From: Haliotis rufescens
Taxonomy: Eukaryota
Reading direction: 5' to 3'
DNA: 64,000 nt
NCBI RefSeq assembly: GCF_023055435.1
Contig: NW_025964383.1
Span: 17,670,001 to 17,734,000, forward strand
In this document: piece after piece, positions 836 to 63,910 of the stretch
Numbering within the stretch: the stretch's first letter is position 1
How the letters are laid out: each line of letters opens with the position of its first letter
Program-made: the position numbers and the translations under genes
The notes under the pieces: generated by a model
What the model was told of the DNA's origin: nothing
What the model saw: the letters and a program-made list of their open reading frames with translations, nothing else
Database searches by the model: none

Positions 836-941
836 TCTTGCTTTTGCTGAGTGTGCTGACCAAAATGTAAGCAATCTCAGAGAGTGTACCAACAATACTG
901 GCGCCATCTTCTGGCAGCTGATTTTGGATATGTTTCTTTAG
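836..941 (+). CDS. Copy 0: terminal exon 5 of a paralog that begins before the window
   Basis: Acceptor tactaaatatctttattctgtttcag. Phase-2 reading (S)LAFAECADQNVSNLRECTNNTGAIFWQLILDMFL*. AATAAA at 1007-1012. Confidence 0.8.
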
Positions 942-1526
942 ACGTATCAATGCAAACACACCCTCCGATAAAAGTGGAGCAAAACATCATGTTATGTTTG
1001 AATCTTAATAAATTAGTCTGAATTCCGACCATCGTTTCTTTAGCATTCTAGTAGCATGCCTGTGTTTCTGGTACATGCACTTTTTGTGAAATGTCGACAA
1101 TGCAAGAATGCAACATTTGGACATGATACAAAATCTCGCAATCCCGCAATCTCGTCAAATTAGACCACAAAGACACGAAATCACGAGAATGCGACAATTC
1201 ATTTTCTCGCGTTTTAGACGCTGTCCGTGCGCATGCGTAATATCATAAGGGTCAAGTCGCATGCCCACATCAGAAGTCCTGTTGTCATGCCTCTTTATTG
1301 TCCAAGTAGCATTTAGCAAACTTATGACTTGAGCTTGAAAATTCTATGTAATGTTCATACACAAAGTCTTATGTAGTGTATTCAAGTCCTCTCCCGTTTG
1401 TTACAGTCTAATTAAGACCATCAACATACTCAGTATAATTTAACAAAAGACAGTGATACCAATGCTTTGATATTAGATATTATGTGTTCATTTCGGGAAG
1501 ATGCGTAGATCAGTCAAAGAACACTA

Positions 1527-1576
<50 letters not shown>

Positions 1577-1590
1577 AACTACTACTACTG

Positions 1591-1621
<31 letters not shown>
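1527..1621. repeat. (TAC)n microsatellite; also 8558-8619, 15131-15179, 22802-22890, 30485-30546, 38298-38344, 46568-46633, 59559-59644
   Basis: Direct reading; one per unit with variable length. It produces the spurious poly-Tyr ORFs. Confidence 0.97.
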
Positions 1622-2512
1622 ATCATAACAATACGTCCGACGATTACAAAACTAAACATTAACGCGTTGCACACTTTGGCAGCAGATATGCAACAGGAGG
1701 TTTTATTTTACATTAAATATGTCTGCAGCACTACCATCATTTCGTTTATTTAAAAATGGTATTGACAGTGTTATCGTTGTTATCGTCACCTGATTAAATG
1801 GTAAAGTTGAAAGATATTCAAGACACACGTCCCAATCAAAGGTTTCAAAGGCAAGCTAGAACATATTGTGGTAAGACGTTGTCAAACAGTCAAAGGCAAT
1901 GTTGAAATATCGAAGCCACTCATTGTGTTCCATGACCACAACATCACTGGCTTTGAAGGAAGCATTGGAATATAAAGTTTCAACATACGGTTGGACGTCT
2001 AATGGTGCAAAGTAAGCGTTGAATGATATACAGTTGCTTGTCAGTGTCTTACCGTCACTGGGGTCCAAAGGACATTCGAAATATAAAAGGACATTCGTTC
2101 TCACATCATTATATGGTTTAATGGAAGAATTGAAATACTTGTACATTTGCAAATCTCGTTGCTTGTCATCGGCTCAAAGGGAGAGTTGAAGTATAAAAAG
2201 ATGTGCCTCGTTGTCAGGGGATTTCAAGGAAGAGTTGAAATATGAATGCGTTCTTCACAACAGGTACTTAGCTAGTGCATTAATATGAAGGGTGATCAAC
2301 AACTGATTAAGGGGCCTAAATATATTATATTTAATGCCACTATTCACAATTTCAAATTGCCAAAACATGTCGGACTGCTATAAAACTTACTACTCGAAGT
2401 GAATATAAAACAACGCTGAAGGTTTAGTCATCAGTATCGACTGGTATGTATTATCGCTGACATTATGTATTTAAGGCAATGTGCCAAGTCTCGATCTGAT
2501 GTCAGGAAAGCA

Positions 2513-3418: not shown

Positions 3419-6116
3419 AACCTGGGATGTTCTGTGACATCGAGCACATTGACTGCATGCTGCCAGGATGAAGTTTGTGATGTGTGTTGCGGCTGTTCTC
3501 CTCTCATCTGGTAGGTAACCATTATACTGTAGCATGTTTCAGTATGTATACATTGCAGACTAACGAAACGAGTTGCATACCATAAGCATGCCAGCCAGCA
3601 CACAGTGATCGTTGATTTAAATCCCAGATACATCCTCATCATAATCCTTACCACGCTACCTCATTACATTGGTCTATAACAGAAAACTGTTAAAAGCCGC
3701 GTTTAACATCACATGCAATGATTCCGTCGATGTGGTCACTTTGTGTGGACGCTAGTTGACATATATGTGTCACGATTTACTGTGTTTCTCGAGAATGCAT
3801 AATTGTCAACAATTTTTTGTTGGATCTAAAACAATTCTTAACTGATGTACAATATTGATAATAAGTCTTTTGGGGTGCTTAATAACATCTTTCTCAATAA
3901 TATTGTAATAGCAGCAAAATTTATTGCCAGAAGAAATAAAACAACACATCGCTTCAACGTGAAATGGGGACTTTTGTTGATATATTACATATTACATAAC
4001 CCCTCATACTTTTATCTTCATATATAATAAATCCGCTACAACAGCGTTTAATCACTAGTTGATATTGATTCATCAACACATGCTCGTGATATCGTCGGAA
4101 TCGTACAATCGAGACTTTTGTTGAATACGGAAAGGTTTTTGTCGCTTTTATGCAAGTTTCCTATAATGTATTTTACCACCAGCAAAATTGTGCGATACAT
4201 ACTACATTATATTGAAGTCTTGGTTAAGACTATTACGGCAATAGTACCTTCGCTGACAATTATATTCTTCTCTGTGTGACCTTCCAGTGTCCGGTTTAGA
4301 GTGGCCTACGAGGAGACAGATTGTACCAGCTACATCTAGTGCATGTCAGAACGTTTATGCACAAATATTGGGGATCATGCAAAGACCAAGGTTTAGCAAT
4401 CTTATTGGAGATGGCAAACTGAGCCTTGACTGCAGGTTAGTATCGTAATTCGCTGATCAAATCTTTTAAAAACAATAATTGTTAAGCTGTTTCCTTTCAG
4501 AGAAAGTAATAGTCAACCTCTGACGAGTGAGTGAGTAAGTTAAAATTTAACGTTGCATCGGCATTTTTCCAGCCATATTGCGTCGAGTCCAAGTTAATAA
4601 GTTTACAATTGAGTCATTTATGCAAAGTAATATTTAAAAACAATTTATGAAACATATTTGAACATAACAATATCATGTATACATTTTTAAAACACGGGCT
4701 AATGACCACTCGTAACCAAAGCTAGGACACCTCGCTGGGGATCATGGGGACTTCCTGCATGATACCCCAGCAGGATTTACGTCATCACTTTAGCTACTAG
4801 TGGTTGTGCATAATACTAGTAATTATGTATATCGTAACTCTCCGATAAACAACTATCAGATGTTATGTGTTGAATTCATCAAATCTTTCTGTTACAGAAA
4901 TCGAGAGAGAGGCGTCATGTTGGACCAGTGAAGAATTGCCGGACACTCTTGTTTCATGTGCACAACGAGACAGGTAGGGTGACTGTACAAGTGTCCATTG
5001 ACATCTACTGAATAAATACCTAAAGACAACCTACACAGGCAGATTAACTATACCTTCTGTACATCTAGATGTCTAGATAAAACATATGGATTGATAGACT
5101 ATACAATGCGTACATCTTGAAGCCGAATTAAAACATACATGGATAGGTGAACTGTTTATTGTGTACATCTACAGGTGAAATGATAAGAGGTGAAATAGGA
5201 TTCCCTTTGTCACAAAATGACGGCCGTTCTGCGTTAATTGTGAAAAACATGCGTTTTCGATCTGCGATCGGTTCCGTCATAAATGCCTGTTTGTGCACAG
5301 TATCGTCTGTAAGTTCTGGTGAAGAATAATATTCGAGGAAGAATTCACCTTTCTAAGAATAAATAACGATGAAGACGACAGAAAGTGACATTTCAATGCA
5401 AGGAGTATTGATCGTAGGTACCGGAAGTTCAGACGATAGATACATTCGGAACGTTTCTGTGCGACTTCAATTACCTCGTATTTCATCACAACGAATTAAT
5501 TCTAACTGGCATGTACACAGTGTCGCTATGTGGATGTGTGACGATATGTGGTGTCTCTACGGACATATGGCCCCTTGAAGTGTCCAATACTTTCATGAAA
5601 TGTAGACGACTTCTATGGATCATTTGTAAATGCATTCGTGATGCACGTAAACTTACTGGATCTTTGCAAGACATCAGTCCGGTGTCAGGCATAAACGTCA
5701 GGGTGCGTGCGATAACGCACAATTACCCTATCAAAAGATATCTAAATTGATAATTAGGTCTTTGGAATTTTTTAAAGTATAATGGCTATACGGACGGTGA
5801 AATTATCCTTCCGATTTGTGGTCCTTCACTGAATAAAATACTCAATAGCTGGGATATTGCTGAGTGTGGCGTTAAACAAAAAAATAAATATGGTTATGAG
5901 AAATCTCAAACTAGTGCATGAAGAGATACTAATTAAATTTGTAGTTACAAAGTGAAATTATGCACGGAGATTGTACAGGTTGCACCTGCATTAATGCTTC
6001 AATTGTGAGTGAATAGAATAACTGGCAAAAATCACATCACCAACTGATGGACTTTCGTTTGACTTTAAGACCAATATATCAGCTTCCAGCAAGTATCTAA
6101 ACAGTGACTTACTGTA

Positions 6117-6380
6117 GTTGGTTTGCTTGTTGTTTTACGCCGCACTCTGCAATATTCCAGCTATATGACGGCGGTCTGTAAATAATCGAGTCTGGACCAG
6201 ACAACCCAGTGGTTGATATCATGAGCATCGATCCACGCAATTGGGATACGATGACAAGCATCAACCAAGTCAGCGAGCCTGACCACCGATCCCGTTTGTC
6301 GCCTCTTACGACAAGCATAGTCTCCTTTTACGACAAGCACGGTTGCTGAAGACCAATTCTACCCCGGATCTTCACGGGGC
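6117..6380 (-). mobile_element. ~260-nt SINE-like non-autonomous retroelement in intron 4
   Basis: Minus strand ccccgtgaagatccggggtagaattggtcttcagc...gcttgtcgtaagaggcgac...gctggaatattgcagagtgcggcgtaaaa plus an AAC-rich tail; the 3' end is shared with the tRNA SINEs. TSD-like ctcta(g/a)ctgta flanks the copy at ~36512-36780. Also at ~20915-21178, ~28044-28307, ~44619-44888, ~52221-52443. Confidence 0.75.
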
Positions 6381-7107
6381 TGCTCTAACTATAAGCAGAT
6401 ACCCCAAGTGTGATGGTCCCAGTGTTCGTGTTACTAACAGCATCGACACAATGCCCCTGTATATATGAGTATGTAAGTGAGTATGGTTTTACGCCGCTTT
6501 TAGCAATTTCCAGCAATATCACGGCGGGGTGTGCCTAAATATATATAATTTGCACTTATATATATATATACGGCCAAATGTTAACACTCAATGATAGGCG
6601 GATAAAAGCAACAATAAGTCACTGATGCGTCAAATTTGAAGAAAAAAAAAATTCTTATAAATTACTTTAAACCGTAAATTCGTTCCTGTAATCAAACGAA
6701 AACGGCTGTTAAATCATGTGTTTATGAACCACTATCGGATTATGGCTATTAGACCATTACTGATCGATTCGATAACTCTATATTCATGAAGCGTCAGAGA
6801 AACACTCTCAGCCAAATGTTTTCATTTTGCCAGTCCAAGCAGAAATTCCGATTTATATGCACAAATATACATCTCATGAAGGTGGAAGCAAATTGGACGC
6901 CCATGAGGATGCCTTTTTCTTGCCTAAATGTCCTGTCCCAGAACTTCCTATAGACGTTATGCCCAAGCGAAGTCGAATACTTATATTTCACATTTTGTTT
7001 TCTCAGCAAACCACAGATGATATTTGCTTTCAGTATTGCCACATTATCCTGACCCTTTGGAAATAGTTATGAATCTATATAAATGGTCACCACGTTAGTG
7101 ACAAATG

Positions 7108-7341
7108 GGGGACAAGGGTGGCCCAATCATCTAAGGCGCCGCCATTCGCTGTGCAGAGTTGCGTCCCTTGGGCACGCAAGAAACCTATGATTGTGAGTTC
7201 GAATCCAGGTTCTCCCCGATTATGTTTCTAGGTTGTCAGCACCATACCTGAATCACTTTGGGCTTTCCTCCCACATTAAGCTGACTCGCCGTGATATAAC
7301 TGGAATACTGTTAAAAGCGGCGTTAAACCCTACACGCTCAC
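7108..7341 (+). mobile_element. tRNA-derived SINE (same insertion as 177-406)
   Basis: A/B boxes and degenerate TSD tagtgacaaatg / tcgtgaccaatg. Confidence 0.75.
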
Positions 7342-8021
7342 TCGTGACCAATGCGGTATTGATCAAGGTATGAAGTAGTTCCTGAAGTTGGGATAGTGGT
7401 GTACTAAGTTAAACAATCAAATGTTCTGACATGATTGAACTTTGTTGTTTTCTGAGAGTAAATAATTCAAGCCAATCCGTTTTTAGATTTCACATGGTCT
7501 TAATGCCATTTGTCTGAGATACTTGTGAATGTAAAGAAAGACCTTCCTTCTTAGCATTAAGGGTAATGGTAAATCTTTGAGACAGGCATTCGGGGGTACA
7601 TTTGTTGGACCAAGCAAAATATTTCTCTTTGTAGTGGAAACATCATCAAAGACCTGCCTCAGTTCCTGTTTTCCTGCCTTAAGTTGACCTTAATAACAAA
7701 TTTGCACCTTGATTATTATAAAAAAGACACTTGTGATGAGATAATTGCAATATATGAATCAAATCTCTCCATTTACGCGAGTGCCATATTTGGCGACAAG
7801 ATGTACAATATACATGTTATTATTTACTAAATATGTTTATTCTGTTTCAGGCGTGCTTTTGCTGAGTGTGCTGACCAAAATGTGAGCAATCTCACAGAGT
7901 GTACCAACACTACTGGCGCCATCTTCCGGCAACTGATTTTGGATATTTTTCCTTAGACGTATCCATGCAAACACACCCTCCGATAAAAGTGGAGCAAAAC
8001 ATCATGTTATGTTTGAATCTT

Positions 8022-8027
8022 AATAAA
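8022..8027 (+). terminator. Polyadenylation signal AATAAA of copy 1; also at 1007, 14623, 22277, 29949, 37775, 46059, 52781, 59023
   Basis: Lies ~66 nt after the exon-5 TAG in every copy whose 3' end is in the window. Confidence 0.7.
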
Positions 8028-8586
8028 TTAGTCTGAATTTCGACCATCGTTTCTTTAGCATTCTAGTAGCATGCCTGTGTTTCTGGTACATAGCACTTTT
8101 TGTCAAATGTCGACAACGCAAGAATGCGACATTTGGACATGATGCAAAATCTCGCAATCCTGCAATCTGGACTTGTCAAATTAAGCCACAAAAACACGAA
8201 ATCGCGAGAATGCCACAATTCATTTTCTCGCGATTTAGACGCTGTCCGTGCGCATGCGTAATATCATAAGGGTCAAGGCGCATGCCCACATCAGAAGTCC
8301 TGTTGTCATGCCTCTTTCATGCTCTCTATTGTCCAAGTAGCATTTAGCAAACTTATGACTTGAGCTTGAAAATTCTATGTAATGTTCATACACAAAGTCT
8401 TATGTAGTGTATTCAAGTCCTCTCCCGTTTGTTACAGTCTAATTAAGACCATCAACATACTCAGTATAATTTAACAAAAGACAGTGATACCAATACTTTG
8501 ATATTAGATATTATGTGTTCATTTCGGGAAGATGCGTACATCAGTCAAAGAACACTAACTACTGCTACTACTACTACTACTACTAT

Positions 8587-8619
<33 letters not shown>

Positions 8620-9295
8620 ATCATAACAATACGTCCGACGATTACAAAACTAAACATTAACGCGTGGCACACTTTGGCAGCAGTTATGCATACTTGTTTA
8701 CTACATATATATATTCTGCCTACAGGAATGTTTGGTTCGTTGGATCTGGTTGGTTAGATCTATATGCCAATAAACCATTTAAAAATTATTGGTCCAAAAC
8801 AACATGGAACAGGAAGTTTAATTTTACATTAAATATGTCTGCAGCACTACCATCATTTCGTTTATTTAAAAATGGTATTGACAATTTTGTCGTTGTTTTC
8901 GTCATCTGATTAAATGGTAAAGTTGAAAGATATTCAAGACACACGTCCCAATCAAAGGTTTCAAAGGCAAGCTAGAACATATTCTGGAAAGTCTTTGTCA
9001 AACAGTCAAAGGCAATGTTGAAATATCGAAGCCACTCATTGTGTTCCATGACCACAAAATCACTGGCTTTGAAGGAAGCGTTGAAATATATAGTATCCAC
9101 ATACGGTTGGAAGTCTATGGGTGCAAAGTGAGGGTTGAATGATATACAGTTGATGGTCAGTGTCTAACCGTCACTGGGGTCCAAAGGATATTCGAAATAT
9201 AAAAGGACATTCGTTCTCACATCATTATATGGTTTTAAGGAAGAATTGAAATACTTGTACATTTGCGAATCTCGTTGCTTGTCAACGGCTCAAAG

Positions 9296-9460
9296 TGAGT
9301 GAGCGAGTTTGGTTTTACGCCGCTTTTAACAATATTCCAGCAATATCACGGCGGGGGACACCAGAGATCGGCTTCACACATTGTACCCATGTCGAGATTC
9401 GAACCCGGGTCTTCGGCGTGACGAGCGAACGCTTTAACCACTAGGCTACCTGACCGCCCC
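9296..9460 (-). mobile_element. Young tRNA-derived SINE (165 nt) with 13-bp TSD
   Basis: Minus strand ggggcggtcaggTAGCCTAGTGGttaaagcg...GGTTCGAATCtc (A and B boxes), (actc)n tail, perfect TSD caacggctcaaag (9283-9295, 9461-9473). Other units have the empty site. Confidence 0.9.
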
Positions 9461-10796
9461 CAACGGCTCAAAGGGAGAGTTGAAGTATAAAAAGATGTGC
9501 CTCGTTGTCAGGAGCTTTCAAGGGAGAGTTGAAATATGAATGAGTTCTTCAGAACAGGTACTTAGCTAGTGCATTAATATGAACAGTGATCAACAACTGA
9601 TTAAGGGGCCTAAATATATTATATTTATTGCCACTATCACAATTTCAAATGGCCAAAAAATGTCGGACTGCTATAAAACTAACTACTCGAAGTGAATATA
9701 AAACAACGCTGACGGTTTTAGTCATCAGTTTCGACTGGTATGTATTATCGCTGACATTACGTATTTAAGGCAATGTGCCAAGTCTCGATCTGATGTCAGG
9801 AAAACAGGTATACGATGACATGCATCAACCAAGTCAGCGAGTCTGACCACCCGATCCCGTTAGTCGCCTCTTGGGACAACCACCTCTTACGACAATACTA
9901 ATGAATACTATCACAGTATGTTTTGAAAATACCGGTATATTGTGTTTTTCCAACATCCTGCATATCTTCACACGAGGCAGGGTGGTCAGGCTCGCTGACT
10001 TGGTTGATGCATGTCACTGTATCCCTATTATGTAGATCGATGCTCATGATGTCAATCACTGGATTGTCTCGATTATTAACAGACCGCCGTCATATAGCTG
10101 GAATACAGTTGAGTGCGGCTTTTAACAAAAACCAAACAAACAAAAACACCTGATAGAAAACTTTACACAAGCATGTGATATGTGACAAATCGAATTCAAT
10201 TATGAAAATAAAGGAACGGTTTTCTTTGATCGAAAAGGCGAATTGTTTTTTTCTATATAATGTGTCTTTACGCATGTTTTGTGACCATAGCAACATCCCA
10301 CAGAATACAAAGATGTCAAAAATGTGCAGGGGTGGGGGGTGGGGGTTATTCATGTTCAACAAATTACTGCTAAAATGCACTATATTGTGGTACATATCGC
10401 AATACATGAATCATTGCTAAATTGCAATACGAAAGTCAGGTCAAGGCACATCACTGTTGACAACCTATTTTTCTTCGAAATTCCATGGGGATATTTAGCA
10501 GTAGTCAGTTGGGTGTTCACGCCCCTTTGAAATGTAAATGTCTCAGTTGAATGTCTCTCCCTATTGTTCCATCAAATTAAGTCGTTATACAGATTTATAG
10601 GAAAGTCGAATAATTGTGGGCGTATTATTCAGTTTACGGAATTCCTCGTAACCTTTTCAGTTGACAAATGACTTGGAAGGATGATTACTCTTGCAATTGA
10701 AACAAATTGGAAAAACCATTATCTTTTCTGAATACTTCTTATATAAAAACCTGAGATGTTCTGTGACATCGAGCACATCGACTGCATGCTGCCAGG

Positions 10797-11330
10797 ATGA
10801 AGTTTGTGATGTGTGTTGCTGCTGTTCTCCTCTCATCTGGTAGGTAACCATTATATTGTAGCATGTTTCAGTATGTATACATGGCAGACTAAAGGAACGA
10901 GTTGCATACCATAAGCATGCCAGCCAGCACATAATGATCGTTGATTTAAATCCCAGATACATCCTCATTATAATCCTTACCACGCTACCTCATTACACTG
11001 GTAGATAACAGAAAACTGTTAAAAGCGGCGTTGAACATTACATGCAATGATTTCGTCGATGTGGTCACTTTGTGTGGACGCAAGTTGACATATATGTGAC
11101 ATATATGTGTCACAACTCGAGAATGCATAATTGTCAACAACTTTTGGGGGGATCTAAAACAATTCTTAACGGATGTACAATATTGATCAATTTACTAAGA
11201 AAGAAATTCTTTTGGGATGCTTAATAACATCTTTCTTAATAATATTGTAATAGCAGCAAAACGGCACATTGACATATGAGTATAAAATGGTTAAAGGCCT
11301 GCTTCTCTGAATTCATAAAAGTTATTATTA

Positions 11331-11368
<38 letters not shown>

Positions 11369-14300
11369 ATATTAATATTATGTCGAAGAATGTATTGCCA
11401 GAAGAAATAATACAACACATCGCTTCAACGTGAAATGGGGACTTTTGTTGATATATTAAATCCCCGTACATAACCCATCATACTTTTATCTTCATATATA
11501 ATAAATCCACTACAACAGCGTTTAATCACTAGTTGATACTGATTCATCAACACATGCTCATGATATCGTCGAAATCGCACAATCGAGACTTTTTTTTAAT
11601 ACGGAAAGGTTTTTGTCGCTTTTATTCAAGTTTTCTATCATGTATTTACCACCAGCAAAATTGTGCGATACATACTACATTATATTGAAGTCTTGGTAAA
11701 GACTGTTACGGCAATATTACCTTCGCTGACAATTATATCCTTCGCTGTGTGACCTTCCAGTGTCCGGTCTTGAGTGGCCTACGAGGAGAGAGCTTGTACC
11801 AGATACGTCTAGTGCATGTCAGAACGTTTATGCACAAATATTGGGGATCATGGTAGGACCAAGGTTTAGCAATCTTATCGAAGATGGCAGACTGAGCCTT
11901 GATTGCAGGTTAGTATCGTAATTCGCTAATAAAATCTTTTAAAATAATTAATTGTAAAGCTGTTTCCTTTCAAAGAAAGTAATCGTCATCCTCTGACGAG
12001 TGAGTGAGTGAGTTAAAATTTAACGTCGCATCGGCATTATTCCAGCCACATTGCGACAAGACCAAGTTAATAAGTTAATAATTGAGTCATTTATGCAACG
12101 TTTCATTTAAAAACAATTTATGAAACATATTTGAGCACAACAATATCATGCATACATTTTTAAAACACGGGCTAATGTCCACCGGTAACCAAAGCTAGGT
12201 CACCTCGCTGGGGATCATGGGGACTTACAGCACCTCGGCTTCCTGCATAATTCACCCAGCAGGATTTACGTCATCACTTTAGCTACTGATGGTTGTGCAT
12301 AATACAAGCCAATATTAAAAAATACTCAGCAATTAGTAGGCTTAAAAACACTGGTTGATGATATTTCCTGTCATGAAAATCATTCCAAGATCCAGTCGAT
12401 TGCTGAAAAGTTGTTCTAACAAGGATATCAGTCTACTTTCAGTAATTGTGTTTATCGTAACGCTCCGATAGCCTAGAGTGTTATTGATGTCAACTATTGA
12501 TATTTGAATTTGCCACCTTTGTACTGCCATGGAGACATGAACAATTGCCATGCATTGGTAGTTCGAGCAAGCATTACACTCATTAATCGTAACCATACAA
12601 TCCCATCCGTATGTGATATGCTTACATAGTAGAAGTCGGGTAAAGTTACAAGGGTCATTTTGTAAATATGACAACTTCTTACTAACTATTATTTAATGTG
12701 CCATATTGATAAAGCTGTTATTATTTTCACCGAACCACCGCAACATTGATAATGAAGAGGTTGGCACACATACAAATTAACTGAATTACCAACCACTTAC
12801 ATTCAACCTTCAGAATATAATTCGAATGTTAGGCAGAAAGACTTGCAATAAATATTTTCTCTTTGCAGCCAGCAGATATTGAGAACAGCAGATGAATGCC
12901 AACGATCAGAGTCTGTGAGAAGATCATATTTGATAGTTGAACGTCTGAACATTGCCCTCAATACCTTCTGTAGCCACAAACCAGGTATACGCATGTCCAG
13001 TTTTCTAAGAGCAGCTGCTTCTGAAATGTTAGCCCGTGTACCACATTGATTGACATGTTGATTCCTTAAATTAATTGACAATGCTATCCAAGATTTACAA
13101 CGATTTACTATGGCAGATGTGTTTAACTTAACAAGGCCTTCATAAATAGCTATCAGATGTCATGTGTTGAATTCATCAAATCTTACAGAAATCGAGGGAG
13201 AGGCGTCATGTTGGACCAGTAAAGAATTGCCGGAGACTGTTGTTTCATGTTCACAAGAAGACAGGTAGGGTGACTGTACGAGTGTCCATTGACATCTACT
13301 GAATAAATAACTTAAGACAACTTACACAGGTAGATTAACTATACCTTCTGTACATCTAGATGTCTAGATAAAACATATGGATTGATAGACTATACAATGC
13401 GTACATCTTAAAAACCGAAGTAAAGCATACATGGATAGGTGAACTGTTTATTGTGTACATCTACAGGTGCAATGATAAGAGATGAAATATGATTCCCTTT
13501 GTCACAAAATGACGTCCGTTCTGCGTTATATTGTGAAAAACATGCGTTTTCAATACAAGGAGTATTGACCGTAGGTATCGGAAGTTCAGACGATAGATAC
13601 ATTCGGAACGTTTCTGAGCGACTTCAATTACCTCTTATTTCATTACAATGATTTAATTCTAACTGGCATGTACACAGTGTCGCAATGGAGATGTGTGACG
13701 ATATGTGGTGTCTGTACGGATATATGGCCCCTTGAAGTGTCCAATACTTTCATGAAATGTAGACATCTTCCATGGATCATTTGGTAAATGCATTCGTGAT
13801 GCACGTAAACTTACTGGATATTTGCAAGACATCAGTCCGGTGTCAGTCACAAACGTCAGGGTACGTGCGGTAATGCACAATTACCCTATCAAAAGATATC
13901 TAAATTGATAATTAGGTCTTTGGAATTTTAGGTAGATTGATGGTGAAATTATCCTTCCGATTTGGTACCGGAACAGGGGTGGTCCTGTCGTCTAAGGCGC
14001 CGCGATTCGCTGTGCAGAGTTGCGACCCTTGGGCACGCAAGAAACCTATTATTCTGAGTTCGAATCCAGGTTCTTATGTTTCTAGGTTGTCAGCACAATA
14101 CCTGAATCACTTTGGGCTTTCCTCCCACATTTAGCTGACACGCCATTATATAACCGGAAGGGTAATGGTAAATCTTTGAGACAGGCATTCGGGGTACATT
14201 TTTTGGACCAAGCAAAATATTTCTCTTCACAGTGGAAACATCATGTAAGACCTGCCTCACTTCCTGTTTTCCTGCCTTAAGTTGACCTAAATAACAAATT

Positions 14301-14557
14301 TGCACCTTTATTATTATAATAAAAAAGACACTTGTGACGAGATAATTGCAATATATGAATCAAATGTCTCCATTAACCCGAGTGCCTTATTTGGCGACAA
14401 GATGTTCAATAGACATGTTATTATTTACTAAATATGTTTATTCTGTTTCAGTCGTGCTTTTGCTGAATGTGCTGACCAAAATGTGAGCAATCTCCGAGAG
14501 TGCACCAACACTACTGGCGCCATCTTCCGGCAGCTGATTGTGGATTTGTATCGTTAG
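10797..14557 (+). CDS. Copy 2: intact 5-exon gene, 162-aa putative secreted Cys-rich protein
   Basis: join(10797-10839,11761-11908,12869-12984,13189-13264,14452-14557), all GT-AG and phase-compatible. MKFVMCVAAVLLSSVSGLEWPTRRELVPDTSSACQNVYAQILGIMVGPRFSNLIEDGRLSLDCSQQILRTADECQRSESVRRSYLIVERLNIALNTFCSHKPEIEGEASCWTSKELPETVVSCSQEDSRAFAECADQNVSNLRECTNTTGAIFRQLIVDLYR*. TATA at 10740, AATAAA at 14623. Synonymous differences between copies (GAA/GAG, CGA/AGA, TGC/TGT) support the frame. Confidence 0.88.
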
Positions 14558-15130
14558 ACGTATCCATGCAAACACACCTTCCGATAAAACTGGAGCAAAA
14601 CATTATGTTATGTTTGAATCTTAATAAATTAGTCTGAATTTCGACCATGCCTGTGTTTCTGGTACTTTTTGGCAAATGTCGACAACGCGAGAATGCAACA
14701 TTTGGACATGATGCAAAATCTCACAGTCCCGCAATCTGGACTTGTCAAGTTAGGTCACAAAAACACGAAATCGCAAGAATGCGACAATTCATTTTCTCGC
14801 GTTTTAGACGCTGTCCGTGCGCATGCGTAATATCATAAGGGTCAAGGCGCATGCCCACATCAGAAGTCCTCTGGTCATGCTTCTTTCATGCTCTATATTG
14901 TCCAAGTAGCATTTAGCAAACTTATGACTTTAGCTTGAAAATTCTATGTAATGTTCATACACAAAGTCTTATGTAGTGTATTCAAGTCCTCTCCCGTTTG
15001 TTACAGTCTAATTAAGACCATCAACATACTCAGTATAATTTAACCAAAGACAGTGACACCAATACTTTGATATTAGATATAATGTGTTCATTTCGGGAAG
15101 ATGCGTTGATCAGTCAAATAACACTAACTT

Positions 15131-30484: not shown

Positions 30485-30546
<62 letters not shown>

Positions 30547-33580: not shown

Positions 33581-33641
<61 letters not shown>

Positions 33642-45019: not shown

Positions 45020-45993
45020 TATGTGAGTGAGTATGCTTTTACGCCACTTTTAGCAATATCCCAGAAATATCACGGCGGGTTGGGTCTAAATATATAAAAT
45101 TTGCACTTATTATACGGCCAAATGTTAAGATGGGTCGGGGGTGTGTGTCCTAGTCGTCTTAGGCGCCGCGATTCGCTGTGCAGAATTGCGTCCCTTGGGC
45201 ACACACGAGACCTACGATTGTGAGTTCGATGATGTTCCTTCGATTATGTTCCTAGGTTGTCAGCACCATAGTATTACCTGAATCACTTTGGGCTTTCACC
45301 AACACTAAGCTGACTTCCCGTGATATAATTGCAATTCTGTTAAAAGTTGCGTTAAACCCAACTCACTCACTCACTAGTGACAAATGCCCTATTGATCAAG
45401 GTATTAAGTATGTCCTGAAGTTGGGATAGTGGTGTACTAAGTTAAACAATGTTCTGACATGATTGAACTTTGTTGTTTTCTGAGAGTAAATAATTCAAGC
45501 CAATCCGCTGAGTTTTAAGATTTCACATGGTCTTAATGCCATTTGTCTGAGATATTTGTGAATATCAAGAAAGACCTTTCCTTCTTAGCATTAAGGGTAA
45601 TGGTAAATCTTTAAAACATGCATTCGGGGGTACATTTGTTGGACCAAGCAAAATATTTCTCTTCGTAGTGGAAACATCATCTAAGACCTGCCTCACTTCC
45701 GGTTTTCCTCCCTTAAGTTGACCTAAATAACAAATTTGCACCTTTATTATTATAATCAAAAAGACACTTGTGACGAGATAATTGCAATATATGAATCAAA
45801 TCTCTCCATTAACGCGAGTGCCATATTTGGCGACAAGATGTACAATATACATGTTATTATTTACTAAATATGTTTATTCTGTTTCAGTCGTGCTTTTGCT
45901 GAGTGTGCTGACCAAAATGTGAGCAATCTCAGAAAGTGCACCAACACCACTGGCGCCATCTTCCGGCAGCTGATTTTGGGTGTTTTTCGTTAG
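40903..45993 (+). CDS. Copy 6: intact 5-exon gene, 162 aa
   Basis: join(40903-40945,41962-42109,43077-43192,43396-43471,45888-45993). Exon 3 QQTLTKADECQRSESVRSTYFRVGYLNISLNTFCNHKP; C-terminus ...LILGVFR*. TATA 40846, AATAAA 46059. Confidence 0.88.
41003..41689 (+). repeat. ~348-nt tandem duplication in intron 1 of copy 6
   Basis: acgagttgcataccataagc...aatattgtaatagcagca occurs from 41003 and again from 41351. Confidence 0.9.
44966..45016. repeat. (TA)n microsatellite expanded in intron 4 of copy 6
   Basis: Direct reading; only a few TA units at this site in other copies. Confidence 0.95.
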
Positions 45994-51600: not shown

Positions 51601-52715
51601 AATTAATTCTAACTGACATGTACACAGTGTCGCTATGTGGATGTGTGACGATATGCGGTGTCTGTACGGACATATGGCCCCTTGAAGTGTCCAATACTTT
51701 CATGAAATGTAGACAACTTCCATGGATCATTTGTAAATGCATTCGTGATGCACGTAAACTTACTGGATTTTTCCAAGACGTCAGTCCGGTGTCATGCATA
51801 AACGTCAGGGCACGTGCGGTAACGCACAATTACCCCATCAAAAGATATCAAAATTGATAATTAGGTCTTTGGAATTTGAAGTAGAATGACTATATGGACG
51901 GTGAAATTATCCTTCCGATTTGTGGTCCTTCACAGAATAATATACTCCATAGCTGGGGTATTGCTGAGTGTGGCGTTAAACAAAGAAATAAATGTCGTTA
52001 TGACGAATCTCCAACTAGTACATGAAGAGATACTAATTAAATTTGTAGTTACAAAGTGAAATTATGCACGGAGACTGTACAGGCTGCACCTGCATTAATG
52101 CTTCAATTGTGGGTGAATAGAACAACTGGCAAAAAACACACCACCAACTGATGAACTTTCGTTTGACTTTAAGACCAATATATCAGCTTCCAGCAAGTAT
52201 GTCAACAGTGACTTACTGTAGTTGGTTGGTTTATTGTTAAACGCCGCACTCAGCAATATTCCAGCTATATGAAGGCGGTCTGTAAATAATCGAGACTGAA
52301 CCAGACAACCCAGTGATTGATATCATGAGCATCGATCCACCAAATTGGAATACGATGACATGCATCAACCAAGTCAGCGAGCCTGACCACCCGATCCCGT
52401 TAGTCCCCTCTTACGACAAGCATAGTCTCCTTTTACGGCAGGCATATTGACCTTAATAACCTTGATTATTATAAAAAAGACACTTGCGATGAGATAATTG
52501 CAATATATGAATCAAATCTCTCCATTAACGCGAGTGCCATATTTGGCAACAAGATGTACAATATACATGTAATTATTTACTAAATATCTTTATTCTGTTT
52601 CAGGCGTGCTTTTGCAATTGCTGAGTGTGCTGACCAAAATGTGAGCAATCTCAGAGAGTGTACCAACACTACTGGCGCCATCTTCCGGCAACTGATTTTG
52701 GATATTTTTCCTTAG
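48641..52715 (+). CDS. Copy 7: intact 5-exon gene, 165 aa, with two in-frame insertions
   Basis: join(48641-48683,49634-49781,50683-50801,51005-51080,52604-52715). +3 nt in exon 3 (QKTLTRADECQRFSGSVRRSRFTNKHLNIALNTFCNHKP) and +6 nt in exon 5 (RAFAIAEC), both preserving frame. TATA 48584, AATAAA 52781. Confidence 0.88.
49178..49257. repeat. (TTGTG)n pentanucleotide microsatellite in intron 1 of copy 7
   Basis: Direct reading; occupies the site of the (ATT)n tract of copies 2, 5, 8 and 9. Confidence 0.95.
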
Positions 52716-53243: not shown

Positions 53244-53379
53244 NNNNNNNNNNNNNNNNNNNNNNNNNNNNNNNNNNNNNNNNNNNNNNNNNNNNNNNNN
53301 NNNNNNNNNNNNNNNNNNNNNNNNNNNNNNNNNNNNNNNNNNNNNNNNNNNNNNNNNNNNNNNNNNNNNNNNNNNNNNN
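53244..53379. other. Assembly gap (136 N) at the expected (TAC)n position
   Basis: Flanks match the sequence on either side of (TAC)n in other units. Confidence 0.95.
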
Positions 53380-55335: not shown

Positions 55336-58300
55336 ATGAAGTTTGTGATGTTTGTTGCTGCTGTTCTCCTCTCATCTGGTAGGTAACCATTATACTGTAG
55401 CATGTTTCAGTATGTATACATGACAGACTAACGAAACGAGTTGCATACCATAAGCATGCCAGCCGGCACATAATGATCGTTGATTTAAATCCCAGATACA
55501 TCCTCATCATAATCCTTACCACGCTACCTCATTACACTGGTCTATAACAGAAAACTGTTAAAAGCGGCGTTTAGTATCACATGCAATGATTCCGTCGATG
55601 TGGTCACTTTGTGTGGACGCTAGTTGACATATATGTGTTACAACTTGCTGTGTTTCTCGAGAATGCATAATTGTCAACAACTTTTGGTTGGATCTAAAAC
55701 AATTCTTAACTGATGTACAATATTGATAATAAGTCTTTTGGGATGCTTAATAACATCTTTCTCAATAATATTGTAATAGCAGCAATACGACACATTGACA
55801 TATGAGTATAAAATGGTTAAAGGCCTGCTTCTCCAAATTCATAAAAGTTATTATTATAATTATTATTATTATTATTATTATTATATTAATATTATGTCGA
55901 AGAATGTATTGCCAGAAGAAATAATACAATACATCGCTTCAACGTGAAAGGGGGACTTTTTGTTGATATATTAAATCCCCGTACATAACACCTCATACTT
56001 TTCTCTTCATATATAATAAATCCACTACAACAGCATTTAATCACTAGTTGATATGGATTCATCAATTCATGCTCACCATAACGTCGGAATCGTACAATCG
56101 AGACTTTTTTTTGAATACGGAAAGGTTTTTGTCGCTTTTATTCAAGTTTCCTATCATGTATTTTACCACGAGCAAAATTATGCGATACATACCACATTAT
56201 ATTGAAGTCTTGGTAAAGACTATTACGGCAATATTACCTTCGCTGACAATTATATCCTTCTCTGTGTAACCTTCCAGTGTCCGGTCTTGAGTGGCCTACG
56301 AGAAGAGAGATTGTACCAGCTACATCTAGTGCATGTCAGAACGTTTATGCACAAATATTGGGGATCATGTTTAGACCAAGGTTTAGCAATCTTATCGAAG
56401 ATGGCAGACTGAGCCTTGATTGCAGGTAAGTATCGTAATTCGCTAATAAAAGCTTTTAAAAACAATAATTGTTAAGCTGTTTCCTTTCAGAGAAAGTAAT
56501 CGTCAACCTCTGACGAGTGAGTGAGTGAGTGAGTTAAAATTTAACGTCGCATCGGCATTATTCCAGCCATATTGCGACGAGACCAAATTTATAAGTTTAC
56601 AATTGAGTCATTTATGCAAAGTTATATTTAAAAACAATTTACGAAACATATTTGAACATAACAATATCATGCATACATTTTTAAAACACGGGCTAATGGC
56701 CACTGGTAACCAAAGCTAGGCCACCTCGCTGGGGATCATGGGGACTTACAGTACCTCGGCTTCCTGCATGATACCCCAGCAGGATTTACGGCATCACTTT
56801 AGCTACTGGTGGTTGTGCATAATATTAGCCAATATTAAAAACTACTCAGCAATCAGTAGGCTTAAAAACACTGATTTATCATATTTACTGTCATGAAAAT
56901 CATTCCAAGGTCCAGTGGATTGCTGAAAAGGTGTTCTAACAAGGATATCAGTCCACTTTCAGTAATTATGCATATCGTAACTCTCCGATAGCCTAGAGTG
57001 TTATTAATGTCTACTCTTGATATTTGAATTTGCCACCTTTGTACTGCCATGGAGACATGAACAATTGCCATGCATCGGTAGTTCGAGCAACCATTACACT
57101 CATTAAGCGTAACCATACAATCCCATCCGTATGTTATATGCTTACATAGTAGAAGTCGGGTAAAGTTACAAGAGTCATTTAATAAATATGACAACTTCTT
57201 ACTAACTATTATTTAATGTGCCATATTGATAAAGCTGTTATTATTTTCACCGAACCACCGCAGCATTGATAATGAAGAGGTTGGCACACATACACATTAA
57301 CTGAATTACCAACGACTTACATTCTACCTTCAGAATATAATTCGAATGTTAGGCAGAAAGACTTGAAATAAATATTTTCTCTTTCCAGCCAGCAGACATT
57401 GACAATGGCAGATGAATGCCAACGATCAGGGTATTTGAGAAGATCACATTTCAGAGTTGAACATCTGAACATTGCCCTCAATACCTTCTGTAGCCACAAA
57501 CCAGGTATACGCATGTCCAGTTTTCTATGAGCAGCTGCTTCTGAAATGTTAGCCCGTGTACCACCTTGAGTGACATGTTGATTCCTTAAATTAATTGACA
57601 ATGCTATCCAAGATTACTACGATTTATTATGGCAGATGTGTTTAACTTTACAAGACCTTCATAAAAAATTATCAGATGCTATGTGTTGAATTCATCAAAT
57701 CTTACAGAAATCGAAGGAGAGGCGTCATGTTGGACCAGTGAAGAATTGCCGGACACTGTTGTTTCATGTTCACAACAAGACAGGTAGGGTGACTGTACAA
57801 GTGTCCATTGACATCTACTGAATAATACCTTAAGACAACTTAAACAGGCAGATTAACTATACCTTCTGTACATCTAGATGTCTAGATAAAACATATGGAT
57901 TGATAGACTATACAATGCGCACATCTTGAAGCCGAATTATAACATACATGGATAGGTGAACTGTTTATTGTGTACATCTACAGGTGAAATCATAATAGGT
58001 GAAATAGGATTCCCTTTGTCACAAAATGACGGGGCAGCTCTAACTGTAAGCAGGTTCCCCAAGTGTGATGGTCCCAGTGTTTGTGTTACTAACAGCATCG
58101 ACACAATGCCCCTATATATATATGAGTATGTGAGTGAGTATGCTTTTACGTCCCTTGGGCACACAAGAAACCTACGATTGTGAGTTCGATTATGTTCCTT
58201 CGATTATGTTCCTAGGTTGTCAGCACCATAGTATTACCTGAATCACTTTGGGCTTTCCTCCAAAACTAAGCTGACTTCCCGTGATATAATTGCAATTCTG

Positions 58301-58957
58301 TCAAAAGCTGCGTTAAACCCAACTCACTCACTCACTAGTCACAAATGCCCTATTGATCAAGGTATTAAGTATTTCCTGAAGTTGGGATAGTGGTGTACTA
58401 AGTTAAACAATTAAATAATCGGACATGATTGAACTTTGTTGTTTTCTGAGAGTAAATAATTCAAGCCAATCCGCTGAGTTTTTAGATTTCACATGGTCTT
58501 AATGCCATTTGTGTGAGATATGTGTGAATATAAAGAAAGACCTTCCTTCTTAGTATTAAGGGTAATGGTAAATCTTTGAGACAGGCATTCGGGGTACATT
58601 TGTTGGACCAAGCAAAATATTTCTCTTCGCAGTGGAAACATCATCTAAGACCTGCCTCACTTCCGGTTTTCCTCCCCCAAGTTGACCTAAATAACAAATT
58701 TGCACCTTTATTATTATAATAAAAAAGACACTTGTGACGAGATAATTGCAATATATGAATCAAATCTCTCCATTAACGCGAGTGCCATATTTGGCAACAA
58801 GATGTACAATATACATGTTATTATTTACTAAATATGTTTATTCTGTTTCAGGCGTGCTTTTGCTGAGTGTGCTGACCAAAATGTGAGCAATCTCAGAAAG
58901 TGCACCAACACCACTGGCGCCATCTTCCGGCAGCTGATTTTGGGTGTTTTTCCTTAG
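55336..58957 (+). CDS. Copy 8: intact 5-exon gene, 162 aa
   Basis: join(55336-55378,56278-56425,57389-57504,57708-57783,58852-58957). Exon 3 QQTLTMADECQRSGYLRRSHFRVEHLNIALNTFCSHKP. TATA 55279, AATAAA 59023. Confidence 0.88.
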
Positions 58958-59590: not shown

Positions 59591-59607
59591 AACTACTACT
59601 ACTGCTG

Positions 59608-59644
<37 letters not shown>

Positions 59645-61484
59645 ATCATAACAATACGTCCGACGATTACAAAACTAAACATTAACGCGTTGCACACTTT
59701 GGCAGCAGATATGCATACCTCTTTACTACATATGTATATTCTGCCTACAGGAATGTTTGGTTCGTTGGATCTGGTTGGTTAGATGTATATGCCAATAAAC
59801 CATTTAAAAACTATTGGTCCAACATGGAACAGGAGGTTTTATTTTACATTAAATATGTCTGCAGCACTACCATCATTTCGTTTATTTATAAATGGTATTG
59901 ACAGTTTTATCGTTGTTATCGTCACCTGATTAAAATGGTAAAGTTGAAAGATATTCAAGACACACGTCCCAATCAAAGGTTTGAAAGGCAAGCTAGAACA
60001 TATTGTGGTAAGACGTTGTCAAACAGTCAAAGGCAATGTTGAAATATCGAAGCCACTCATTGTGTTCCATAACCACAATATCACTGGCTTTGAAGGAAGC
60101 GTTGAAATATAAAGTATCCACATACGGTTGGAAGTCTATGGGTGCAAAGTAAGGGTTGAATGATACACAGTTGATGATCAGTGTCTAACCGTCACTGGGG
60201 TCCAAAGGATATTCAAAATATAAAAGGACATTCGTTCTCACATCATTATATGGTTTAATGGAAGAATTGAAATACTTGTACATTTGCGAATCGCGTTGCT
60301 TGTCATCGGGTCAAAGGGAGAGTTGAAGTATAAAAAGATGTGCCTCGTTGTCAGGGGATTTCAAGGGAGAGTTGAAATATGAATGCGTTCTTCAGAACAG
60401 GTACTTAGCTAGTGCATTAATATGAAGGTTGATCAACAACTGATTAAGGGGCCTAAATATATTATATTTAATGCCACTTTTAACAATTTCAAATGGCCAA
60501 AAAATGTCGGACTGCTATAAAACTAACTACTCGAAGTGAATATATAAAACAACGCGCGTTGAAGGTTTAGTCATCAGTTTCGACTGGTATGTATTATCGC
60601 TGACATTACGTATTTAAGGCAATGTGCCAAGTCTCGATCTGATGTCAGGAAAACAGGGATAGGATGACATGCATCAACCAAGTCAGCGAGTCTGACCACC
60701 CGATGACGTTAGCCGCCTCTTGCGACAACCACCTGTTACGACGATACTAATGAATACTATCACAGTATGTTTGGAAAATACCGGTATATTGTGTTTTTCC
60801 AACATCTTGCGTATCTTCACACCAGGCGACTAACGGGATCGGGTGGTCAGACTCGCTCACTTGGTTGATGCATGTCATTGTATCCCAATTGCGTGGATCG
60901 ATGCTCATGATGTCAATCACTGGATTGTCTGGTTCAGTCTCGATTATTTACAGACCGCCGTCATATAGCTGGAATATTGCTGAGTGCGGCGTTTAACAAC
61001 AAACAAACAAACAAAAACACCTGATAGAAAACTTTACACAAGCATGTGATATGTGACAAATCGAATTCAATTATGAAAATAAAGGAATCGTTTTCTTTGA
61101 TCGAAAAGGCGAATTGTTGAAATTCAGGTCAAGGCCCATCACTGTTGACAACCTATTCTTCTTCGAAATTCCATGGGGATATTTAGCAGTAGTCAGTTGG
61201 GTGTTCATGCCCCTGTGAAATGTTAATGTCTCACTTGAATGTCTCTCCCTATTGTTCCATCAAATTAGTTAGTTATACATATATATAGGAAAGTCGAATA
61301 ATTGTGGACGTATAATTCAGTTTATGGAATTCCTCGTAACCTTTTCAGTTGACACATGACTTGGAAGGATGATTACTCTTGCAATTGAAACAAATTGGAA
61401 AAATCATTATCTTTTCTGAATACTTCTTATATAAAAACCTGGGATGTTCTGTGACATCGTTCACATCGACTGCATGCTGCCAGG

Positions 61485-61995
61485 ATGAAGTTTGTGATGT
61501 GTGTTGCTACTGTTCTCCTCTCATCTGGTAGGTAACCGTTATACTGTAGCATGTTTCAGTATTTATACATGACAGACTAACGAAACGAGTTGCATACCAT
61601 AAGCATGCCAGCCAGCACATAATGATCGTTGATTTAAATCCCAGATACATCCTCATCATAATCCTTACCACGCTACCTCATTACACTGGTCTATAACAGA
61701 AAACTGTTAAAAGCGGCGTTTAGTATCACATGCAATGATTCCGTCGATGTGGTCACTTTGTGTGGACGCTAGTTGACATATATGTGTTACAACTTGCTGT
61801 GTTTCTCGAGAATGCATAATTGTCAACAACTTTTGGTTGGATCTAAAACAATTCTTAACTGATGTACAATATTGATAATAAGTCTTTTGGGATGCTTAAT
61901 AACATCTTTCTCAATAATATTGTAATAGCAGCAATACGACACATTGACATATGAGTATAAAATGGTTAAAGGCCTGCTTCTCTAAATTCATAAAA

Positions 61996-62047
<52 letters not shown>

Positions 62048-63910
62048 TAATATTATGTCGAAGAATGTATTGCCAGAAGAAATAATACAATACATCGCTT
62101 CAACGTGAAATGGGGACTTTTTGTTGATATATTAAATCCCCGTACATAACACCTCATACTTTTATCTTCATATATAATAAATCCACTACAACAGCGTTTA
62201 ATCACTAGTTGATATTGATTCATCAACACATGCTCACCATATCGTCGGAATCGTACGATGGAGACTTATTTTTGAATACGGAAAGTTTTTGTCGCTTTTA
62301 TTCAAGTTTCCTATCATGTATTTTACCACCAGCAAAATTGTGCGATACATACTACATTATATTGAAGTCTTCGCAGACAATTATATCCTTCTCTGTGTGA
62401 CCTTCCAGTGTCCGGTCTTGAGTGGCCTACGAGGAGAGAGATTGTACCAGCTACATCTAGTGCATGTCAGAACGTTTATGCACAAATATTTGGGATCATG
62501 GTAAGACCAAGGTTTAGCAATCTTATCGAAGATGGCAGACTGAGCCTTGATTGCAGGTAAGTATCGTAATTAGCTAATAAAATATTTTAAAATAATTAAT
62601 TTTTAAGCTGTTTCCTTTCAGAGAAAGTATTCGTCAACCTCTGACGAGTGAGTGAGTGAGTTAAAATTTAACGTCGCATCGGCATTATTCCAGCCATATT
62701 GCGACGAGACCAAGTTAATAAGTTTACAGTTGAGTCGTTTATGCAAAGTTACATTTAAAAACAATTTATGAAACATATTTGAGCATAACAATATCATGCA
62801 TACATTTTTAAAACACAGGCTAATGCCCACCGATAACCAAAGCTAGGCCACCTCGCTGGGGATCATGAGGACTTACAGTACCTCGGCTTCCTTCATAATA
62901 CCCCTGCAGGATTTACGGCATCACTTTAGCTACTGATGGTTGTGCATAATACTAGCCAATATTAAAAAATATTCAGCAATTAGTAGGCTTAAAAACACTG
63001 GTTTATGATATATCATATCATGAAAATCATTCCAAGGTCTAGTCGATTGCTGAAAAGTTGTTCTAATAAGGATATCAGTCCACTTTCAGTAATTGTGTTT
63101 ATCGTAACTCTCCGATAGCCTAGAGTGTTATTGATGTCAACTATTGATATTTGAATTTGCCACCTTTGTACTGCCATGGAGACATGAACAATTGCCATGC
63201 ATCTGCAGTTTGAGCAACCATTACACTCATTAATCGTAACCATACAATCCCATCCGTATGTGATATGCTACATAGTAGAAGTCGGGTAAAGTTACAAGAG
63301 TCGTTTTGTAAATATGACAACTTCTTACTAACTATTGTTTAATGTGCCATATTGATAAAGCTGTTATTATTTTCACCGAACCACCGCAGCATTGATAATG
63401 AAGAGGTTGGCACACATACACATTAACTTAATTACCAACGACTTACATTCTACCTTCAGAATATAATTCGAATGTTAGGCAGAAAGACTATAAATAAATA
63501 TTTTCTCTTTCCAGCCAGCAGACATTGACAATGGCAGATGAATGCCAACGATCAGGGTATTTGAGAAGATCACATTTCAGAGTTGAACATCTGAACATTG
63601 CCCTCAATACCTTCTGTAGCCACAAACCAGGTATACGCATGTCCAGTTTTCTATGAGCAGCTGCTTCTGAAATGTTAGCCCGTGTACCGCATTGAGTGAC
63701 ATGTTGATTCCTTAAATTAATTGACAATGCTATCCAAGATTTACTACGATTTACTATGGCAGATGTGTTTAACTTTACAAGGCCTTCATAAATAGCTATC
63801 AGATGTTATGTGTTGAATTCATCAAATCTTACAGAAATCGAGGGAGAGGCGTCATGTTGGACCAGTGAAGAATTGCCAGAGACTGTTGTTTCATGTTCAC
63901 AACAAGACAG
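61485..63910 (+). CDS. Copy 9: exons 1-4 intact; exon 5 lies beyond the window end
   Basis: join(61485-61527,62409-62556,63515-63630,63835-63910), open with canonical splice sites. TATA 61428. Confidence 0.82.

Follow-up and report, generated by a model that had tools for sequence, protein, structure and literature searches.

Abalone lysin and sp18 are small, helical, secreted proteins that evolve fast, show signs of positive selection and are encoded by five exons; to our knowledge, lysin is built without a disulfide scaffold. Lineage-restricted tandem families of small secreted proteins rich in cysteine (Cys) are common in molluscs. The DUF19 domain of Pfam is an extracellular domain of about 130 amino acids (aa) with 12 conserved Cys. 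C. elegans carries 51 DUF19 genes with products of 140-220 aa, of which 42 have a signal peptide and 14 are induced by infection (PMC3534327, Table 2), and a 19-kDa oyster protein is annotated as a 'DUF19 domain-containing protein' (PMC10058639). The locus analysed here is a stretch of 64,000 nucleotides (nt) from the red abalone Haliotis rufescens (contig C605:17670001-17734000; hereafter the window, to whose coordinates all unit positions refer), which holds a tandem array of five-exon genes. According to our analysis, these genes probably represent a tandem Haliotis family of secreted helical disulfide proteins that may bind an extracellular partner via a hypervariable loop and were shaped by duplication and diversifying selection.

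Tandem Gene Array and Coding Status

The array was located by BLAST searches of each exon against the window. Nine tandem head-to-tail units were found, all on the + strand with a spacing of 6.1-8.3 kb (Table 1). Exons 1, 2 and 4 were present nine times each and exon 3 eight times, and exon 5 occurred as eight full copies and one remnant. Six units were complete and intact (U2, U4, U5, U6, U7 and U8; 162 or 165 aa), two were broken (U1 and U3), and U9 crossed the window end and was intact beyond it. The U2 exons (43+148+116+76+106 nt) were joined at four canonical GT..AG junctions (10839/11761, 11908/12869, 12984/13189 and 13264/14452) in phases 1,2,1,2 into a 489-nt open reading frame (ORF) of 162 aa, so the five-exon gene per repeat unit that the initial annotation had proposed from these junctions was exact. 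The Cys residues of U2 were located at positions 34, 63, 74, 98, 110, 123, 134 and 145, plus one within the signal region. The same annotation had assigned each unit its own TATA box and AATAAA signal, and both were recovered at fixed offsets, the former at -57 nt from the ATG in all nine units and the latter at +66 nt from the stop in 8/8 units with exon 5 inside the window. In U1, the distance between exons 2 and 4 was 462 nt vs ~1280 nt in the other units, and the deletion of exon 3 shifted the frame. U7 had in-frame insertions of 3 nt in exon 3 and 6 nt in exon 5.

The tandem gene array was confirmed to be real and protein-coding by its open frames, its exclusively in-frame indels and its invariant Cys. 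No stop codon occurred in the 11 intact copies of the extended array, although neutral change would have created ~5.8 among the 128 variants observed (P0=0.003). The indels of the coding sequence (CDS) were all multiples of 3, as had been noticed at the outset, compared with 25-29% of the small intron indels (none in the short intron 3), and indel density was ~4-fold lower in the CDS than in introns. All eight Cys codons were invariant across the intact copies, which agrees with the Cys positions originally listed, and the splice sites, TATA and AATAAA were kept among units. Third-position synonymous changes had also been offered as support for coding. This argument fails because the ratio of nonsynonymous to synonymous divergence (dN/dS) is ~1 and the CDS diverges at the intron rate: pairwise dN/dS among window copies was 0.67-1.39, the pooled ratio of nonsynonymous to synonymous differences per site (pN/pS) was 1.04, and the CDS p-distance of 0.072 lay inside the intron range of 0.057-0.104. 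Outside the Cys and the reading frame, the scaffold drifts almost neutrally among tandem copies. Against a paralogue from an older cluster on contig C24, the C605 copies had a dN/dS of 0.56-0.75 at dS ~0.5.

The same figures would suit a recently amplified array that is drifting without function and whose open frames are a legacy of its youth. The dN/dS of ~1, the CDS p-distance within the intron range and the two of nine window copies that are already broken point in this direction. Such an origin is nevertheless scarcely probable, given the lack of stops (about 5.8 expected) and of frameshifts, the invariant Cys, the dN/dS <1 against the old C24 paralogue, the retention of the family in four species, the black abalone orthologue nested within the array clade, and nonsynonymous changes that are unevenly spread and clustered in one loop.

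Each intact unit was letter-identical to a RefSeq 'uncharacterized protein' of Haliotis rufescens in a local comparison of the spliced exons. Because every intact unit equals a RefSeq model, the array is hidden only from the prokaryote-style ORF track, and its earlier description as hidden and possibly undescribed does not extend beyond that track. Full-length searches were carried out with database proteins letter-identical to the units (P0010, P0015, P0016 and others), and the window was searched exon-wise.

Hypervariable Loop

Residues 76-90, encoded by exon 3, formed a hypervariable loop. Pooled pN in the loop was 0.221 vs a pS of 0.042, giving a ratio of 5.2, and in 2000 codon bootstraps of the loop the difference pN-pS was never <=0. 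When each variant was counted once, the 45 nt of the loop held 25 nonsynonymous variants vs 2 synonymous ones (binomial p=0.015), whereas the protein outside the loop held 76 and 25, respectively, with a ratio of 0.84. Moreover, the loop contained a 5-codon deletion in Um3/Um2, two units upstream of the window, and a 1-codon insertion in U7. In the AlphaFold2 model described below, the loop was placed between helices 65-77 and 87-99 and had the lowest predicted local distance difference test (pLDDT) values of the mature part.

Secreted Protein Features and Predicted Structure

The signal-peptide-like N-terminus that had initially been recognised was encoded by exon 1 together with the start of exon 2. 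Residues 1-19 were the sole strongly hydrophobic stretch (Kyte-Doolittle 19-residue mean about 1.5-1.6), and V15-S16-G17, with V at -3 and G at -1, would fit signal cleavage before L18 as a heuristic judgement only, by the -3/-1 rule of thumb. The hydropathy scan gave no internal transmembrane candidate, in accordance with the initial annotation. G17, W20 and R24 were invariant in 20/20 family proteins, in which residues 23-24 were RR, KR or SR; the motif W-x-x-[RK]-R resembles a possible dibasic propeptide cleavage site. From residue 25 onward, the proteins had a mass of 14.9-15.9 kDa and an isoelectric point of 4.5-5.7. The sequons NVS and NTT, which had been pointed out before, were present in the C605 copies (NNT in U0) and varied across subfamilies, where they were not kept.

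The structure of P0010, the product of U8, was modelled with AlphaFold2 on the basis of a 20-sequence alignment. The mean pLDDT was 81 and the predicted template modelling score was 0.73, and most positions between residues 50 and 160 had a pLDDT above 90. The model was all-helical with nine helical segments, and as predicted the protein divides into two three-helix halves; structural matches were split at residues 23-100 and 100-162. The two helical half-domains anticipated by the initial annotation thus reappeared in the model as a helical two-half arrangement, but a sequence duplication between the halves was not detected (hhalign probability 0.9%). A Foldseek search of the model against the PDB returned nothing (best E 1.2), the top match of an exhaustive VIA-align scan of 48,161 PDB chains had a Z of 4.8 over 47 residues, far below what helical models reach by chance, and a search of the PDB sequences with the family profile (hmmsearch) produced chance matches only; an absent PDB match is not equivalent to proof of a new fold. 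Pfam searches with four exon peptides and nine full-length proteins yielded nothing credible. The initial impression that this was not a named protein therefore held in Pfam and in the PDB, by sequence and by fold.

Comparison with DUF19 and Lysin

A loose likeness to DUF19 proteins of the T20D4.11 type had been suggested from the Cys spacing. The family may be a divergent molluscan branch of the secreted Cys-rich helical DUF19 / CPG4 / DUF1397 proteins (nematode T20D4.11-like), which we regard as possible though on balance unlikely; if so, it would be a remote member of a known, functionally obscure superfamily and no new family. The ESM-Atlas feature search echoed the suggestion. DUF19 / T20D4.11-like nematode clusters ranked first for P0010 (0.90, 192/256 shared features) and DUF19 clusters ranked second and third for P0003 of H. 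asinina (53% identical; 0.86 and 0.85), with the CPG4 and DUF1397 clusters further down in the rankings. In calibration, however, shuffled proteins reached 0.9 in 4-10% of cases, so that such a score is a lead only and this background rate itself counts against the placement. Furthermore, the family resembles the C. elegans DUF19 proteins in being small and secreted with a putative signal peptide, and its 157-177 aa fall within their range of 140-220 aa (mostly with a signal peptide; PMC3534327); an oyster DUF19 protein has been annotated as well (PMC10058639).

The Pfam hidden Markov models (HMMs) were negative. A scan with PF01579 of nine family proteins and four exon peptides at E<=10 gave no match (gathering score 23.2 bits), and six-frame searches of the whole genome with PF01579, PF15481 and PF07165 found nothing at this locus. 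For PF15481 (CPG4) and PF07165 (DUF1397), no match was obtained on proteins or genome, the controls of the genome search being likewise unmatched. The sole DUF19 match in the genome was sub-threshold (C583:16123703-16124080) and was rejected as probably low-complexity or spurious because the stretch around it is open in all three + frames. This stretch, C583:16120019-16124214, extends for ~4 kb with ORFs of 1353-1386 aa and presumably consists of low-complexity or repetitive stop-free sequence. Against the 12 conserved Cys of DUF19, the C605 copies have 8 invariant ones in the mature part, and the other subfamilies have 9 to 10. No HMM match appeared at any threshold tried, no DUF19 structure came up in the PDB searches, the Cys are fewer than in DUF19, and the likeness to DUF19, CPG4 and DUF1397 is one of language-model features alone.

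The similar size, helical fold, fast evolution (dN/dS ~1) and restriction to Haliotis recall lysin and sp18 and would suit a reproductive (gamete-recognition, seminal or egg-coat) protein akin to these abalone-specific, small, secreted proteins. Such a role is very improbable. The fold and sequence searches of the PDB, in which the lysin and sp18 structures were included, gave no lysin/sp18 match, this family forms a 15-copy array, and its transcripts were found solely in hemolymph/tentacle and mantle data.

Extent of the Family

The exon-2 peptide matched the genome at 14 places on C605 (17.62-17.87 Mb) and at 5 more divergent places on C24 (3.66-3.78 Mb). The C605 array was mapped with 70 kb flanks added to the window (134 kb in all). 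Its members were Um3, Um2, U0-U10, the divergent U11 and one inverted copy ~130 kb downstream; the contig holds 15 or more array copies, and 11/13 complete C605 units in the 134 kb were intact. Um3 and Um2 (region C605:17623582-17646800; window-equivalent -46418 and -27880) lie 18.5 kb apart at the upstream array end and encode an identical 157-aa protein (P0018, two XP accessions), and they therefore mark a very recent segmental duplication at this end. The second, older cluster (C24:3657229-3783470) had at least five members with 10 Cys and unchanged phases. In these members, 9 residues were inserted ahead of exon 5, and the additional Cys pair was located in the N-terminal segment and the variable loop. 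The C24 paralogue encoding P0021 likewise had five exons in phases 1,2,1,2, with exons 3/4 of 116/76 nt as in C605, and 10 Cys.

When the exon-2 peptide profile was searched against 1.84 billion (1.84e9) representatives, only four full-length relatives of 164-169 aa were found, in all of which the match was placed precisely at the position of exon 2. Three further matches, P0002, P0006 and P0007, were rejected as relatives; they are repetitive proteins with many short matching stretches. A profile of the four relatives retrieved 20 proteins, all named 'uncharacterized protein' and none with a Pfam domain, from H. rufescens, H. cracherodii, H. rubra and H. asinina only. The 20-sequence profile at E<=10 added two shorter Haliotis entries and nothing else. 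In the searched databases, the family is thus apparently found only in Haliotis, which bears out the initial suggestion of a possible lineage-specific family.

In a maximum-likelihood tree, the C605 copies formed one 100/100 clade, which enclosed the black abalone protein P0011 beside U8, and the remaining species fell in three other subfamilies. In P0003, P0004 and P0008 of H. asinina and H. rubra, the mature part had 9 Cys, an odd count that may point to a free thiol or to a disulfide bond between molecules; the additional Cys sits in the variable loop. Family proteins were 157-177 aa long and had five exons in phases 1,2,1,2, a putative signal peptide, W-x-x-[RK]-R and 8 core Cys, together with a conserved C-W (C-W-T-S in most members) and T-G-[AT]-I.

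Transcript and Proteome Evidence

A full-length homologue of the greenlip abalone, H. laevigata, was present as the contiguous 597-nt contig comp64210_c0_seq1 in a hemolymph + epipodial tentacle transcriptome (PMC6003135), and also as the mantle transcriptome contig Haliotis_sp_Tri_3878 (PMC6003135 additional files 1, 7 and 16). It had a signal peptide, W-x-x-R-R and all 8 core Cys, and its C-terminal exon was nearly identical to that of H. rubra P0004. The contiguous mRNA shows that the five-exon product is made in a congener. In contrast to the window units, this transcript belongs to the 10-Cys subfamily and to another species, and it was neither discussed nor named by Mann et al. 2018 (PMC6003135). 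It tells little about function.

The array could supply variants of a pathogen-binding loop if the proteins acted as a humoral immune or recognition factor of the hemolymph. Tandem amplification and a hypervariable loop suit such a factor, as does the assembly of the H. laevigata homologue from hemolymph + tentacle data, and 14/51 C. elegans DUF19 genes are infection-induced (PMC3534327), which is relevant only if the DUF19 link holds. We consider this role unlikely, as the proteins have no known immune domain and no likeness to known antimicrobial or lectin folds. A role as a shell-matrix (biomineralisation) or mantle secretory protein is highly unlikely. The mantle transcript Tri_3878 and a peptide from the acid-soluble nacre matrix that was assigned to the H. 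laevigata homologue (PMC6003135) would favour it, but this single-peptide identification has a coverage of 6.5%, 2 MS/MS (tandem mass) spectra and a relative abundance of ~0.0004% (PMC6003135, additional file 7), is absent from the accepted protein lists of the authors (additional files 4 and 5; PMC6003135), and concerns a different subfamily and species.

RefSeq Models and Further Features of the Window

The RefSeq loci LOC124119833/834/835/847/850 and LOC125371659 have the same five exons and identical products for U2 and U4-U9 (Table 1). They differ from the present description in that they give neither name, domain nor function and merge adjacent units into multi-isoform loci. Cross-unit chimeric isoforms were found among them, namely U0 exon 1 + U2 exons 2-5, U0 exons 1-3 + U1 exons 4-5 (LOC124119835 isoform X4), U4 exons 1-3 + U5 exons 4-5, and U6 exon 1 + U10 exons 2-5. 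The chimeric loci span window positions 3468-14557 (LOC124119835), 24737-37709 (LOC124119834) and 40903 to window-equivalent 74192 (LOC124119850), and their exons are up to 27 kb apart with three entire genes skipped. These isoforms reflect either read-through or trans-unit splicing, or mis-joining of paralogous reads in the annotation. The main texts of the literature searched contained no mention of the LOC/XP identifiers or sequence motifs of the family. The genes themselves are public already and are not new; the definition and extent of the family, its hypervariable, diversifying loop, the fold prediction and the absence of a solved structural relative are what is added here.

One assembly gap lies in the spacer between U7 (stop at 52715) and U8 (ATG at 55336), at distances of 529 and 1956 nt from them, respectively. 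It touches no exon or intron, and therefore no reading frame rests on gap letters. Four other units have an equivalent spacer with which its flanks were collinear, and there the interval between the flank matches measured 85-118 nt; a gap in a tandem array could hide one or more collapsed whole units. The length of intron 4 ranged from 1068 to 2877 nt among units (e.g., 13264-14452 vs 26900-29778), whereas introns 1-3 were stable, and repeat elements were likely gained or lost there. In U6 intron 1 (41003-41695), a 340-nt stretch was duplicated in tandem (2.0 copies, 95% identical), and the same element was present once in U2 intron 1 (~10895-11030). A stretch of U2 intron 4 (~13960-14080) appeared tRNA-like by eye and had no ARAGORN or Rfam match; the scan of the window found no tRNA (ARAGORN) and no Rfam family.

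Table 1. Units and associated features of the C605 array in window coordinates, with the corresponding database entries
Feature	Position	Strand	Remark	Protein	RefSeq accession	RefSeq locus
U0, exon 5 only	836..941	+	exons 1-4 lie 2-4.3 kb upstream of window; joined, an intact 162-aa ORF			
U1, broken	3468-3510, 4288-4435, 4898-4973, 7851-7956	+	exon 3 deleted			
TATA box TATATAA of U2	10740..10746	+	57 nt before ATG			
U2, intact 162 aa	10797-10839, 11761-11908, 12869-12984, 13189-13264, 14452-14557	+		P0025	XP_048246826.1	LOC124119835 isoform X3
Hypervariable loop, residues 76-90 (U2 exon 3)	12903..12947	+	same place in every unit; between Cys74 and Cys98			
AATAAA polyadenylation signal of U2	14623..14628	+	66 nt past stop			
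U3, pseudogene	17179-17221, 18329-18476, 19387-19502, 19713-19788	+	exon-3 acceptor AA, not AG			
U3 exon-5 remnant, 33 nt	22181-22213	+				
U4, intact 162 aa	24737-24779, 25557-25704, 26500-26615, 26825-26900, 29778-29883	+		P0029	XP_048246822.1	LOC124119834 isoform X3
U5, intact 162 aa	33057-33099, 34031-34178, 34974-35089, 35294-35369, 37604-37709	+		P0027	XP_046338444.2	LOC124119834 isoform X2
U6, intact 162 aa	40903-40945, 41962-42109, 43077-43192, 43396-43471, 45888-45993	+		P0016	XP_046338464.2	LOC124119850 isoform X3
U7, intact 165 aa	48641-48683, 49634-49781, 50683-50801, 51005-51080, 52604-52715	+		P0015	XP_048246819.1	LOC124119847
Assembly gap (N)	53244..53379	.	U7-U8 spacer			
U8, intact 162 aa	55336-55378, 56278-56425, 57389-57504, 57708-57783, 58852-58957	+		P0010	XP_046338439.1	LOC124119833
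U9, exons 1-4	61485-61527, 62409-62556, 63515-63630, 63835-63910	+	protein of full model given	P0024	XP_048246823.1	LOC125371659
U9 exon 5	window-equivalent 66498-66603	+	2.6 kb beyond, outside window			
U10			outside window	P0014		LOC124119850 isoform X1
Um3 and Um2			upstream	P0018		LOC125377519 / LOC124119852

Proposed Function and Significance

The favoured reading, a tandem Haliotis family of secreted binding proteins, can be formulated as a sequence of steps. The N-terminal signal peptide would be followed by a short segment ending in W-x-x-[RK]-R and cut at the dibasic site. Cleavage would leave an acidic, all-alpha domain of ~15.5 kDa with four disulfides (8 Cys) and variable N-glycosylation sequons. 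The hypervariable loop of this secreted, disulfide-stabilised helical scaffold may serve to bind a ligand or other partner outside the cell, and a repertoire would arise from gene amplification together with diversifying selection, much as in families that act in immunity, chemosensation or gamete recognition.

Several points weigh against this formulation. The statistical support for selection on the loop is moderate, with the binomial p=0.015 given above and p=0.06 in a Fisher test of the loop vs the rest of the protein. Gene conversion among units may distort the loop statistics, and exon mosaics shared between units were visible. A dN/dS of ~1 and a CDS divergence equal to that of the introns are also expected of decaying copies. 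The case for expression and splicing of the C605 copies is built on RefSeq models and on the transcript of a congener, heuristic rules underlie the proposed signal peptide and dibasic cleavage, and the binding function is purely inferred.

A further-reaching proposal, which is rather unlikely and is put forward tentatively, is that the array constitutes an abalone-specific recognition repertoire on a scaffold without solved counterpart, with one loop positively selected over 15+ paralogues. If this were true, a classic recognition-protein genus would turn out to harbour a new variable-binder system of invertebrates, with a role in immunity, chemosensation or gamete interaction. Abalone are a textbook system of fast-evolving secreted recognition proteins (lysin, VERL). 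Beside these, a second tandem family that is much larger, carries one focused hypervariable loop and has neither a Pfam domain nor a solved structural relative would offer a tractable new case of repertoire evolution by duplication and diversifying selection. As a candidate marker, the family may also be of use in the study of immunity or chemosensation in this declining fishery species.

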